Part shown: one piece after another, positions 20,621 through 26,344 of the stretch | Layout: every line of letters starts with the position of its first letter | Position numbering within the stretch: the first letter of the stretch is position 1 | Assembly: GCA_907165135.1 (NCBI GenBank) | Contig: OU015568.1 | Location: 9,858,001-9,922,000 of the forward strand | From: Oikopleura dioica | Taxonomy: Eukaryota > Animalia > Chordata | Reading direction: 5' to 3' | DNA length: 64,000 nucleotides | Made by a program: the position numbers and the translations under genes | Notes under the pieces: generated by a model | What the model saw: the letters and a program-made list of their open reading frames with translations, nothing else | Told to the model about the DNA's origin: nothing | Database searches by the model: none

Positions 20621-22112
20621 AAGCCCCCGCCGAGCTATTTTTCAAGACAATAATTTTCTTTCTCTTTGACGCCCTTTGATCGGGCTCCCCAAACTATTCA
20701 AGAAAAAATAGCTCAACTACAGCAATAGTAAACACAGCCTTATCAAATTTTAGACGATAACGAAATTCTAGAGGAGCATTTGGAGATGCCTTTCTGCCTA
20801 TTTTTCCACTAGAATGTCTTCCGAAAGCAGCTCGAAATGTGCGCGACTTCGATTAGCTTTTTCAAATAAATTCATTTTTGAAAATCTTAAAAATGGTTAA
20901 ATTCTTATCAATGATGATGCTTTAAAATCTCCTTTGAAAAGCTCTTTACAGTACACTTTTTCTCTTATTGTAACGCAAAAGCTTCTCTATCATTCGACCG
21001 AGAAATATTAAAAAGGTTGTAAATGTATTTGAAATTGGCAGAAAAATATTCACTTTGTTCCTGTTTGGAATAAGCCCCCGATTAATCTACGGATTAGGTT
21101 TTACATTTTTGTGATCAATATCACAATATCACCGATAGTGGCCACCTAGCCAAATGTTGTCTCGTTTTTCTTCGTCTGAGCTTGCAACCGACTCTGCCAC
21201 TTCTCAAAATAATAAATCAGCACCAGGCCAAAAGCCAAACCAAAGATAAAAATATGCTCTAATGAATTCTTACCTGGGGTTGTTAGTGTACCAACATCAC
21301 GCTGATTTCTTCCAATTCGGCCTATCTGCTCATTTACAATCTTCAACTGGCTTTTTATAATAAGAAAAAGTTGTTCTCTTTGTTGATTTTGAAGCCAGTT
21401 CCTTGTGTTCAAAATGCGGGCTTGCTTTGAAAAAATAGTCGTTTGCTGGAACTGCGTAAGAAGATGGATATGTTTTCTGAGCAGGGATTAGTAATTTCGA
21501 TGGCCGCTTGATAATATGTTGATCTATAAAAATACCGACTTTTCCAGAAAAAAAACTTGCGTTCAAAGATTGACGCATAAAACGTGGTAAGCAAAGTACC
21601 GTCTATTTTTTTTACTCTTGATTGTGATTAGTAAAAGCGAAATATTGCTACACTTAGTAAGAGTGCTAAATTAGATAAATGCGGTACTTGAGTTATTAAA
21701 CGAGCCCCTGTTGCTGCTGATAAAGAAGTTCGCCACTTGTTCGTGCTCTAACCGAGTTACGACTGATAATTACACATGGCCAAATTTGTCCACTTGACTT
21801 TGGAAAAAGAGGGCAGTTGTCTAAAACGAATACGAACTCAGAGACATCTAAAATGAGCGTAACAAATGCCTTGGAAGGTACACGTGGTCGTAGTCGGGTT
21901 CTGGAAGATCGTGTTGACAGGAACATCGCCGCTCGTACTGTACATTCGAAGCGGCTTCATCCCTAAGTTCAAAGTCGAGAAAAGTGCACGGAGGAGCGCT
22001 TGATAAATGAGCTTGCACTGAGTGAGGTCTTTGGGACGATGTTCAGGAAAGTTACATCAAAAGAAGATTTCTTCCAGAAACGTTACTTTTGTATAAATTT
22101 AAAATATGCTAC

Positions 22113-22355
22113 TGTAAGGAGTCTGCTATACTGCCTTTTCCCACTGGAAGAATGCCTGCTAATCTCTAAGGACAACAAGGAAGAGTCGGTAGTAGAGTAA
22201 TCGTTGCTGTATATTTTGTAGAGAAAAGTTGGAAATAAATAACGAGTTGCTCGGAGGAGGTAAAAGTTACGAATGCCACTTCTGATCGGGCTCGACCGGA
22301 GTTGCGCTCGATCAGATAATGATAACGTGGGCGAGAGTCTAGCAAACCCTATACT
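22113..22355 (-). repeat. 3' LTR (lacks the first 3 nt of the 5' LTR)
   Basis: Sequence identical to 26099-26341. Confidence 0.92.
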
Positions 22356-22565
22356 CCCCCTGAGACTTGAGCATATGATAAGAATAGTGGCAGGAAAAGA
22401 CTTTGACGCATCTAATGAACAGGATCTTGAGAAAATGCTACATTCTGGGTTCGATTCTGCGTTAAAAAACCACGTGGGAGAAAAAGCATGAATCTAGACC
22501 AGAATATGTTGAGTAGCTCTTCTAGCGATGGCGAGCGGGCGAATCGGCTGGATCAGGGATTGTGC

Positions 22566-25450
22566 TCAATAAATGGTCGGCGACGGTCTGTAGTGATAAA
22601 GTCTAACCTTTTCAGGCCCCGGTCGATGATACAGAGCGAGCTCTGTTGGACCTGAAGGGGCGGCATTTTTCGCATAGTTGTAGCTCTTGCTGCTGGAGCT
22701 ATTGATGTTCATCGGTTGAACTTGGGTTTTCACTCGAGATGATGTCCGCGGCGCTTTCGGATGCAGTTCGACAACTGTACTGTTCGGAGAAGCTTCGGGT
22801 CGAGTTCGCTTTTGACGTCGTTTTTGCACTGGAGTGGGTCTCTTTTGTGATGCGACATTTTCTGACGAATTATTTAGATCTGCCACATCACGCGACTTGA
22901 CATCTAAGTTCTGGGTAGATAGAGCTTGAGAATGGGCTGATTCGGAGATGGTGATTTCCCAGGTGGTTCCACCAGTAGTAACATCCGCGGCATATTTCAC
23001 AGGCGAGATATCTGGGTTGATAGTCTGAACCTGAGACCTTTTGACGGGCGTATAACTCCTCTCCCCCTGAGACGATGAACCCGATTGAGTTGATTTCTTT
23101 GGAGGTGGAATTCGCGGTTGAGCTATTTGATGAGCCTTCGACTTGATAGTCGAGGTGAGGTGAGGGAAACTACGGTCCATTTCGAAATCGTCGATGAATC
23201 TCAAATTGTCGAGTCGTCGAGAAGCGTGACCACTGTGCTCGGTGATGCTGGCCAAAGCTAAATCCAGCATCTTACCGTTTTGTAGAAAGAGCAGATGGCG
23301 ACGATCGGAATGCAGGTAGAAGTGGCGTCCATTTAGCATCATCTCCGGACACTCGCATCCCCATTCAATCGCAAAGTGTTCTTTGTGAGTGTTGGAATCC
23401 GCGGCTAACCAATATGCCCATTTTGGAGGGCGAGCCAATCGCATTTGTAGCTCCTGTAGCGCGAGATTCGCGTTTTGTGACCATTTGGAAACGGCTGTGT
23501 CAGTCGCCGAGTTTCTGACTGAGTAAAGTGGCACAATGCGATGAGAAAAGCTGTCTGTTGCGCTCTTTTCTCCCACTGTCGTTTCAAAAAATGGTCGAAC
23601 CGAAAGGGGTTCAATTACCGACGTGAGTTCCTTTAAGTTCCCTGGGGGTTCCATCATCCGCGGTTTCAACAGATTTTCTGGGCCTGGCCTAGCCTCAGAC
23701 TGCGTGATGTCTCGGCCAAGGAGTCTCGCCGGTTGTTGGAGGGGTACTTTTGTTTCCGCCCCGAACGGAAATTTTCCCGGTTGACCATTCCGAATCAGCG
23801 AAGCCTCATCTACCTGGTGTGACTTGTCGCTCTTGTCCGGAAATGTGATGTGTAGCACCTCTTTTACTCGCTTCGCTGGGCATCCTTGGTCACGGGAATT
23901 CGGTGATGCAGCTAACGTAAACTTTTTGTTGTCCGCGGTAACGTTGGTAGCTTTAGATCGCTCATTGTGGGTGATTCGGAAGCACTTGACTCTACTATGA
24001 GCCACACCCTTGAGTTTTATCGTTTGGGACTTTGTCTTCGTAAAAGAGTTGTCGAAATACAACGTAAGAGTTCTTAACTTGTTGTCGACAGCGAGTCCGT
24101 CTATCGCTGCGTTGTCGAGAACGTCTCTGCCCAGTAGATTCGGAAAACCGGCGGGCGTAACCACCAGCTCGACCTTGATTTGTGGTCCATCGTTGAAGGA
24201 GAACCGGCAATCCAGTAAACCAAGTGGCCTTTGCGGCGGTGACTTGGGGTCGAATCCAGAAATGTCGAATGGGCAGGGTTGGAGTTGTTTGAGAATTTGG
24301 TCGGGTACGCAATCGACTGAAACTGTAGAAGAAGCAGCTCCGCTGTCTACCTCCATCATGGTGTCAAAACTTTTAGAGTCCACCGTGATGGTTGTAGCTG
24401 CGAAGTTAGTCTTGATTGAATTCTTCGACTTCAGTTGATAGTATTGGAATGGTTCCAGTTGTTCTTCAATTGTCGTCTTCATCACTTTCTTTTCGGATTT
24501 GTCGTCGCAGTCGGTATCTTCGCTATTCGAGTTTCCGCCTTTCGGGCTCTTCTTTCGCCTGTTCCATCTCCCGCCTTTCTTCTTTTGGAAGTTGACGGAG
24601 ACAGAAGTGTCAACTCTGTTTTGGATCGTTTGTTGTGCCAGGCGAGCAAGTTCCTTTATTGAGAAGACGTTACTCAGCGAAGGAGAAATCTGATTGAAAA
24701 CTTCAGGCTCGTTGGATCGTAACTGAAGATAGAGCAGCATGGCTTCTATGACTTCGAAGACATCATCGGCTTCTAGGTCTCGATTTTTGTGAGATTTGAA
24801 AGCGGCTTTAATCGCCCCTCTCGCCTCTCTCATCTTTTTCTGGACTTCCGCGGCGTAGTGCGCGGTTGGCTTCGTAGGGTCGAATTCGATGTCCCATACT
24901 TCGGATAAGGAGAGGAAGAAGTGGCTTCTATCGCCGAAATTTTTTCTAGAATTGTCTTTGCGTCTTCCCAGGTTGAGCACTGGAGGATTTCTTCACCGAT
25001 CTGTCGTTCGATGGAGATATCGAGGTGTGAGTAAACGCAGTTCAAGAATGGTTGTAGTCTGCTTGCGTGACCTTCGACGTGTGCTTTGTAAAATATTGAA
25101 AGTCGGCCCAGGAAGTTCGTAAATTCTGCGTGTGAACTTCCATCGAGTTTGGAGGTGTCTGTCATGTATCGTGTAAATGTGGCTGTGATGTGAGCTTCTT
25201 CTCGATAATCCGCGGTTGTTTGGTGACCTTGGGCGAAAGACTGGGAACGGTTGAGTTCGTGTTTGCAGAGGGTTCCCATCATTTGGTTTATCCGGTCCCG
25301 TTCCAAGATGTTTTTGTTGATAATCGGACGCAAGACTGGCTCTTTCGCCGGGTCAGCTTGTATCTGACTCTCAAGGTCGCGGTTCATGTCCAGAAGTAGT
25401 GAGATTCGGACGCCCGCTTCGTATATTGATCCCGGATCGTTGTCGGTCAT
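22566..25450 (-). CDS. Gag-aspartic protease polyprotein with connection/RNase H remnants (ORFs 24830-25450 and 22566-24980, joined at an A6 run)
   Basis: Protease MEVDSGAASSTV and NLLGRDVL. Basic NC-like QKKKGGRWNRRKKSPK. Connection-like KWSQNANLALQELQMRLARPP. RNase H-like KEHFAIEWGCE...LNGRHFYLHSDRRHL. No YxDD and no HHCC/DDE visible. Confidence 0.8.
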
Positions 25451-26098
25451 AGCTCAAAATGTGCGAAGTCACGAGATCTTGATCAAAAGTTTTACCTTTT
25501 GGGCCCTCAGAAATAGCCAGCAACTTTTTACGGTTACTGACAATGACGCTGAGGTGCCGATGTACGCGTTGTCGATCTCGGAGTTCTTGTCTTCTCTTGG
25601 CAAATTTTCTCTTGCTGGAAGTGTTTTCGTAAAATTCTCTGTCTTCTGTGTTTTTGTTTTAGTTTCCGCGGCTTTGTGTCTTCTGATTATTTTCAGAGTG
25701 AGTGGTGTTTCGTTTTCGCGTGTGTAGGTGGGCGTTGCGTCACTTGTCCGCGGCGGGGCCTAGGCGGCGGCGTGGTGGCGCGCGCGAGGTGTTGGAGGTG
25801 TGTGTGTGGTGAGCGAAGGAGTAGCGCGGGCGTGTTCCGTTGCTCGGTGCGTGGGTTTGTTGTTTTATTCTCGCGGCGATTTCGGATGGCGGTGATCAGG
25901 GCCAACGGAATTTTTGTGCGCGGCGGGAATTTCTGTTTTCGTAATTTTCGTAATTTTCTCTTGAAACGGCGTTTCTAGCGGTTCCAAGGAAAATTAGGAG
26001 TTGATTCGTAATCCGCGGTCTCTGATTGGTCGAAACGGCGAAATTTACTCGTCGGAGAAGTCGTCACTTTTCCAGAATCTGGGTCTTCTTGACACCAC

Positions 26099-26344
26099 TG
26101 TAAGGAGTCTGCTATACTGCCTTTTCCCACTGGAAGAATGCCTGCTAATCTCTAAGGACAACAAGGAAGAGTCGGTAGTAGAGTAATCGTTGCTGTATAT
26201 TTTGTAGAGAAAAGTTGGAAATAAATAACGAGTTGCTCGGAGGAGGTAAAAGTTACGAATGCCACTTCTGATCGGGCTCGACCGGAGTTGCGCTCGATCA
26301 GATAATGATAACGTGGGCGAGAGTCTAGCAAACCCTATACTACA
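26099..26344 (-). repeat. 5' LTR
   Basis: TGTAGTATAGGG...CTCCTTACA on the minus strand, followed by G and the PBS. Confidence 0.92.

Follow-up and report, generated by a model that had tools for sequence, protein, structure and literature searches.

How does a long terminal repeat (LTR) retrotransposon that lacks the core of reverse transcriptase (RT) and the whole of integrase come to have identical LTRs? The question is raised by an element of 4,227 bp located on the minus strand, at positions 22113-26339, of a 64,000-nucleotide stretch of the Oikopleura dioica genome (GenBank assembly GCA_907165135.1, contig OU015568.1, positions 9,858,001 to 9,922,000; this whole stretch is called the window, and its numbering is used throughout). 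A first-pass annotation of the window, made from the sequence alone, described a young retroelement that retains Gag and protease and suggested that it belongs to a selected non-autonomous family rather than being a decaying copy. The analysis reported here leads to the conclusion that the element is most probably a non-autonomous, internally deleted LTR retrotransposon of the Tor (Ty3/gypsy-like) group, which borrows RT and integrase and carries a relic downstream of the protease. Such an element would illustrate, as a clean case from nature in a very compact chordate genome, what a retrotransposon must supply itself and what it can borrow, with Gag and protease staying under selection and polymerase and integrase being dispensable by borrowing.

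Internally deleted, trans-mobilised LTR elements are represented by barley BARE2, the plant LARDs, mouse IAP I-delta-1 and the ETn/MusD pair. Elements of this type parasitise an autonomous partner or out-copy it, and recombine with it via co-packaged RNA; in these systems the autonomous partner is known, is closely related and has matching LTRs. Plant terminal-repeat retrotransposons with a GAG domain (TR-GAG) were reported by Chaparro et al. in 2015 (PMC4350172). The Ty3/gypsy-like Tor elements of Oikopleura dioica were described in the same year by Henriet et al. (PMC4402516).

Four recently inserted copies share the deleted structure

The genome searched was the Oikopleura dioica assembly OKI2018_I69 (64.3 Mb, 19 scaffolds), which was built from nanopore reads and polished with Racon and Pilon (PMC8008620). 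Four full copies of the element, collinear through all deletion junctions, were found on three scaffolds: the focal copy A (C1, 9.88 Mb, minus strand in the window), copy B (C5, 10.2 Mb), copy C (C1, 4.32 Mb) and copy D, which lies on the Y-specific scaffold (C3, 2.57 Mb; G000:C3:2572080-2576308). Besides these, the assembly contains one older truncated fragment, 83-85% identical. The focal structure is thus not unique.

The focal copy is bounded by a pair of direct repeats that are 100% identical (raw repeat limits 22111-22355 and 26097-26341). The true LTR limits were set by comparing the four copies, whose flanks differ, which gives 241 bp for the 5' LTR (26099..26339, TATAGGG...CCTTACA) and for the 3' LTR (22113..22353). 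The two LTRs, which had been judged identical by eye, are identical over this entire length, and the coordinates given at first pass were essentially right. The same four nucleotides, GTAG, stand at both ends as a target-site duplication (26340..26343 on the 5' side and 22109..22112 on the 3' side). Across the copies the target duplications are GTAG, AGGT, ATAG and one imperfect AATC/ATCA, the two LTRs of copies A to D differ at 0, 1, 0 and 2 of 241 positions, respectively, and the 3' LTR of copy C has later received an 810-bp insertion resembling a miniature inverted-repeat transposable element (MITE). The separate target duplications, the 0-2 LTR differences and the shared deletions show that the deleted form itself was inserted independently and recently, after the deletions arose, and has moved repeatedly. 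The locus therefore belongs to a family, as had been proposed, and is not a lone decaying copy. Domestication of the Gag-protease by the host was rejected as an explanation, since there are several copies, recently inserted and flanked by LTRs.

In sequence the four copies are mosaic, combining segments of one another with segments of an older sub-lineage; in one divergent patch, copy D is 91% identical to the old fragment, to which copy A is 73% identical. This mosaicism implies frequent recombination between sub-lineages, as expected of co-packaged RNAs.

Two of the copies have been annotated in GenBank as ordinary protein genes (CAG5101532.1, g17182, and CAG5086456.1, g11215; 92-93% identical to the element open reading frame (ORF)), so that transposon frames sit in the gene set.

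The RT core and integrase are absent

In the focal copy the coding region is assembled as two ORFs, ORF1 and ORF2, and a Pfam scan of both yielded nothing significant. RVT_1 and rve had no match in either ORF, and a single sub-threshold match to RT_RNaseH was obtained (E 0.07), so that these profiles detect no intact RT or integrase. The identities of the parts were traced instead via relatives, namely an abundant autonomous Tor family in the same genome and the metagenomic proteins P0003, P0004 and P0005. Residues 13-419 of ORF2 align to residues 169-584 of the autonomous protein with 41% identity and comprise the last part of Gag, the protease and the linker to RT; the linker itself (ORF2 codons 331-413; 23742..23990, minus strand, as for all parts of the element given below) aligns to autonomous residues ~500-584.

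At the first deletion junction (23724..23741) the RT core, about 197 codons, is gone: ORF2 residue 419 corresponds to autonomous residue 584 and ORF2 residue 414 to autonomous residue 782, residues 585-781 are absent, and RVT_1 occupies 628-791 of the autonomous protein. The earlier observation that the element has no YxDD motif and no integrase is borne out by this missing segment and by the Pfam result. A 6-nt indel at 23734-23739, which separates copies A and C from copies B and D, lies exactly on the junction.

Downstream, ORF2 residues 414-571 align to autonomous residues 782-982, that is, to the RT thumb/connection and RNase H. The thumb/connection relic (23421..23723, up to ORF2 codon 520) shares 43% identity with autonomous elements across 108 residues. 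The RNase H relic, recognized by alignment as well as by the sub-threshold Pfam match, is reduced to 51 codons (ORF2 521-571; 23268..23420), and at its start a deletion has removed about 40 codons including the first catalytic Asp motif. At the third deletion junction (23238..23267) the rest of RNase H and the entire integrase, about 515 codons, are missing by alignment to P0005, in which RNase H is followed by Integrase_H2C2 (321-375), rve (395-490) and then a tail: ORF2 residue 571 corresponds to P0005 residue 143 and ORF2 residue 582 to P0005 residue 661. The remaining pol C-terminal tail relic (ORF2 codons 582-768; 22677..23237) is 49% identical to P0005 661-866 and 32-42% identical to the tail of the abundant family. 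The end of P0005 aligns to ORF2 761-768 and the TAA of copy D follows one codon later, while copy A continues for 36 extra codons before its stop (22566..22676); a copy-A-specific 1-nt difference at 22588 alters this C-terminal end.

The stretches that had been named connection-like, RNase H fragment and pol tail are therefore homologous to those parts of autonomous relatives, and all three large deletions (RT core; N-terminus of RNase H; rest of RNase H with integrase) are in frame. The order RT, RNase H, integrase is seen in L026, a copy of the abundant family, and in P0005, and places the lineage by descent in the Tor group of Ty3/gypsy elements (Metaviridae); env and integrase have no counterpart in the focal element.

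Apparent constraint on Gag and protease and its release downstream

For estimation of selection, the four copies were projected on the codons of copy A and the variable sites were tallied, giving a ratio of non-synonymous to synonymous variation (pN/pS) for each region. The LTR pairs being near-identical, most of the differences between copies arose in replicating lineages, where selection for transposition acts. The N-terminal part of Gag has 29 synonymous and 14 non-synonymous sites (pN/pS 0.14, p 3.3e-10 vs neutral), and the C-terminal part of Gag together with the protease has 41 and 15 (pN/pS 0.10, p 6e-16), with 0.09 for the Gag C-terminal part and 0.12 for the protease taken separately. 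After the protease, there are 27 synonymous and 67 non-synonymous sites (pN/pS 0.77, p 0.27); taken separately, the linker gives 0.46, the RT/RNase H relic 0.63 and the tail 1.54. Pairwise pN/pS estimates agree with these values, and the outcome is little altered when shared and private variants are treated apart.

A relative-rate test with the abundant family as the outgroup points in the same direction. The RT/RNase H relic has accumulated 29 unique changes, compared with 4 in the autonomous P0005 (p 1e-5), and is thus evolving about 7 times faster, while Gag has 12 unique changes compared with 18 in P0004, a difference that is not significant. These counts indicate strong purifying selection on Gag and protease, whereas the pol relics have been released from constraint and evolve almost neutrally.

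Gag and protease

The N-terminal part of Gag (ORF1 codons 1-170; 24941..25450), comprising a helical hairpin and the first capsid lobe, matches the autonomous-family Gag at 39% identity. Its C-terminal part (ORF2 codons 15-190; 24411..24938), assigned by homology, comprises the second capsid lobe and a basic region with no zinc knuckle, and has 41-46% identity with the autonomous family and 66% with the metagenomic P0004. A fold search with whole Gag was swamped by the N-terminal helical hairpin, and the capsid part was accordingly modelled alone. The six best structural matches of the resulting AF2 model (pLDDT 88) are to the capsids of dArc1, dArc2, Arc and PNMA2 (Z 6.3-8.1), the next, unrelated match scoring 4.4; the Foldseek E-values are weak (0.5-3). 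On this model, Gag is predicted to have the two-lobed capsid fold of the retroviral, Ty3-derived type.

The intact retropepsin protease (ORF2 codons 191-330; 23991..24410) was assigned by motif alignment and by its relatives, with the D-S-G-A motif at 24339-24350. Both D-S-G-A and LLGRD are invariant among relatives (in alignment A3, the E, D and G of ExDSG, and LLGxD). The relative P0003 passes the Pfam RVP cut-off, and the focal protein itself falls below it. Searching the PDB with a profile built from alignment A2 was uninformative on the protease, because its long rows drew in RT and integrase. The early identification of Gag and a DSGA protease is upheld by the capsid model and by the invariant motifs.

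Reading frames of the four copies

The first-pass annotation had assumed a single open frame of about 960 codons, and this does not hold for the focal copy as assembled, which reads as two ORFs in different frames (25450..24830, 206 codons, and 24980..22566, 804 codons). The offset amounts to one base at an A-run (24940..24945) in the helix that closes the first capsid lobe, and downstream of this run ORF1 continues out of frame for 36 codons to a stop at 24830-24832 (24830..24940). The run differs among the sister copies, being A6 in A and B, A7 in C and AAAAGAA in D. Copy D is the sole copy with one continuous frame (928 codons), as in the autonomous relatives, which encode gag-pol as one frame; copies B and C have further one-base frame shifts, the other one-base differences lying at the equivalents of window positions 23927, 23166 and 23067, and none of the four copies has a stop codon in gag or the protease. 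Programmed or transcriptional slippage at the A-run was rejected on three grounds: it would yield an upstream product in which Gag ends within its first capsid lobe, the run does not form a canonical slippery heptamer, and the relatives use one frame.

The offset may be a nanopore homopolymer error of the assembly, and it is not fully trusted because one-base homopolymer deletions of this kind recur in another Tor family, among copies without other differences.

In that abundant family (L042-L046 compared with L026), identical losses of a single base, in an A6 run and in a T5 run, turn up repeatedly in copies that show no other difference or that come from separate sub-lineages, and they shorten the 1,726-codon frame to 610 or 810 codons. 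Such a pattern has the look of nanopore homopolymer errors left uncorrected in repeats. As a practical warning, since one-base homopolymer differences recur in repeated elements of this nanopore-based assembly, calls of "broken" or "intact" elements based on reading frames alone are unsafe.

Autonomous relatives and a candidate helper

A DNA search of the assembly for an autonomous parent returned only the copies of this family. When all 118 genome candidates for the connection relic were scored, the best match outside the family was 43% identical, and among 150 scored matches to rve none lies within the four copies. A search of 1.8 billion representative proteins yielded only marine metagenome fragments with 49-66% identity, and a metagenome scan with ORF2 gave no match. 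The nearest autonomous family in the genome is the abundant Tor family used above, with 39-46% protein identity. At least 16 of its copies (L023-L026 and others) have a 1,726-codon gag-pol frame, and it carries RVT_1, RT_RNaseH and rve (rve at C1:6112427-6112714), its 3' half being assessed from match tables. Four of these copies do not differ by a single substitution across 3.1 kb, a sign of a very recent burst. The LTR ends of this family are TATTGGG...CCCTTCA, and the 5' LTR is followed by a one-base spacer and TGGT.TCA...; its polypurine tract (PPT) is a G-run (GGGGGGG).

Because of its recent identical copies, its similar LTR ends, its type of primer binding site (PBS) and its G-run PPT, the abundant family is the best candidate helper that we infer from sequence comparison. 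As regards the autonomous partner sharing LTR and PBS that was envisaged at first pass, the signals of the abundant family are similar but not identical to those of the element, and no close parent is present in the assembly; possibly a closer autonomous parent exists outside it. Well over 100 other Tor copies in the genome bear an integrase.

Proposed mechanism and alternative explanations

As the RT core and integrase are absent, both must come in trans. According to the proposed mechanism, the element RNA would be transcribed from its own 5' LTR and translated into a Gag-protease(-relic) polyprotein, which would build particles around that RNA. Reverse transcription and integration would then be performed by the RT/RNase H and integrase of a co-expressed autonomous Tor element. 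A requirement for the element's own Gag and protease in cis would account for their conservation, co-packaging of sibling RNAs would generate the mosaic copies, and the post-protease stretch would be a relic, open mainly since the family is young. The four mobile copies, the constrained Gag-protease and the missing RT core and integrase agree with the original proposal of a non-autonomous family with its own Gag and protease and with RT and integrase supplied in trans.

Several findings weigh against this explanation. Synonymous divergence in Gag-protease is 0.14-0.26, compared with 0.03-0.05 for the LTRs, leader and tail, and the Gag-protease segments may stem from recombination with autonomous relatives, in which case the selection signal is partly the history of those relatives. 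The assembled focal Gag, like that of copy B, is cut within the first capsid lobe by the one-base offset, and, should the one-base shifts be real, two young copies would have moved while lacking their own intact Gag-protease. Finally, outside short islands the LTR and leader are only about 45% identical to those of the candidate helper, the abundant family. The depth of the Gag-protease divergence, the patch of copy D shared with the old fragment and the offset gag frame of the assembled focal copy would also suit a family in decay, that is, dead relics of a once-autonomous element with Gag-protease conservation inherited through recombination with autonomous relatives. We nevertheless consider decay improbable, as four independent insertions with only 0-2 LTR differences share the deletions, and another transposon later struck copy C, so that the deleted form itself must have moved recently and repeatedly, Gag evolves no faster than in the closest relative, and gag and protease are free of stops in all copies. 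A variant of trans-mobilisation in which the family has no cognate autonomous partner at all, uses RT and integrase across families at about 43% identity, and combines its own selected Gag-protease with translatable junk, open in frame and free in sequence, that would protect or package the RNA is unlikely.

The long open frame after the protease calls for an explanation of its own. At first pass it was suggested that the remodelled region could have a new function, and about 470 codons are indeed open in copy A, with mild constraint in the protease-proximal linker (pN/pS 0.35-0.5). A new selected protein function is nonetheless very hard to reconcile with the near-neutral ratio of the region as a whole, with a tail ratio of about 1.5 and with the excess of lineage changes over the autonomous relative; moreover, the catalytic parts have been deleted, the C-terminus differs among the four copies and no Pfam domain is present, and we give this explanation hardly any credence. 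Alternatively, the frame itself may be kept open by selection while the amino-acid sequence is free, for example if a stop long before the usual end of pol made the genomic RNA prone to decay or disturbed packaging coupled to translation. Up to the presumed ancestral pol stop, the three large deletions and both 6-nt indels outside homopolymers are multiples of three, for which the chance is about (1/3)^5, and 94 substitutions after the protease should have created 4.2 new stops, compared with 0-1 seen, the one seen being at the normal pol end of the relatives. These numbers are small, however, and the test is post hoc (p 0.015-0.08); the deletions may also be in frame because the downstream domains still worked at each loss. 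Furthermore, copies B and C carry one-base shifts in the region, real or due to assembly error, so that of the earlier description of this region as in-frame deletions with no stop, the in-frame nature of the large deletions stands and the uninterrupted frame does not extend to these copies as assembled. Selection on the frame alone is thus a minority possibility that deserves to be kept in mind, and a non-autonomous Tor element with a post-protease relic remains the explanation that we favour.

Comparison with known elements

The element resembles the Tor elements described previously (PMC4402516) in its host, its LTRs, its young near-identical copies and a splice-donor-like leader site near the gag start. 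Autonomous Tor relatives have the order protease, RT, RNase H, integrase within their single gag-pol frame; in contrast, the focal element is missing the RT core, part of RNase H and the whole of integrase, and has no env. Among described classes TR-GAG (PMC4350172) is the closest, being likewise a short non-autonomous LTR element that keeps a gag frame and obtains its enzymes from other elements, and the kind of element, a non-autonomous deletion derivative, is already known. TR-GAG elements, however, occur in plants and encode gag only, in a single ORF, whereas the chordate element encodes in addition a protease and open relics of RT, RNase H and the pol tail. A literature search for such Tor derivatives found no description.

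What sets the element apart from the trans-mobilised families BARE2, LARD, IAP I-delta-1 and ETn/MusD is the partner, the closest one in the assembly having about 43% protein identity.

Leader, cis signals and minor observations

The paired LTRs and short target-site duplication of an LTR retrotransposon are accompanied by a PPT adjoining the 3' LTR. This G-rich tract, GGGGGAG (22354-22360), corresponds to GGGGGGG at the equivalent place in the abundant family and forms the end of the 3' untranslated part (22354..22565). The PBS-like site TGGTGTCAAGAAGACCC (26081..26097), 1 nt past the 5' LTR, has the position and form found in the abundant autonomous family. A candidate primer is a tRNA-like 3' end at one site (G000:C5:15181861-15181880), which with CCA added would pair with the first 12 nt; no exact 14-nt tRNA match to the PBS exists in the genome outside the copies. 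The PBS noted at first pass corresponds to this PBS-like TGG... stretch one nucleotide after the 5' LTR, with which the best candidate host tRNA would pair over 12 nt. The candidate tRNA site has the T-loop TTCGAAT followed by CCCTT, TCTTGAC and A, and is the sole such site.

The long 5' leader (25451..26080) is A/C-rich and shares only short islands with the leader of the autonomous family. Shortly 5' of the gag ATG it contains a conserved motif, CTGAGGGCC..AAAGGTAA (window ~25493-25513; L026 ~960-985), which is common to the two families with otherwise unalignable leaders and resembles a splice donor. Splice donors near the gag start have been reported for Tor3a elements (PMC4402516). With respect to composition, the segment 22001-26000 of the window has a GC content of 0.48, compared with about 0.39-0.40 in the flanks, and a strong negative AT skew on the plus strand.

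The MITE-like insertion in copy C (L012:5410-6210; G000:C1:4327396-4328196) is 801-810 bp long and carries terminal inverted repeats of 23 nt as well as numerous CCAATTGG repeats in subterminal position. The genome contains at least three full and dozens of partial copies of this insertion, and a 46-nt internal piece of it occurs in arrays with a spacing of about 55 bp at C1:5305167-5306474 and C1:4051915-4052453.

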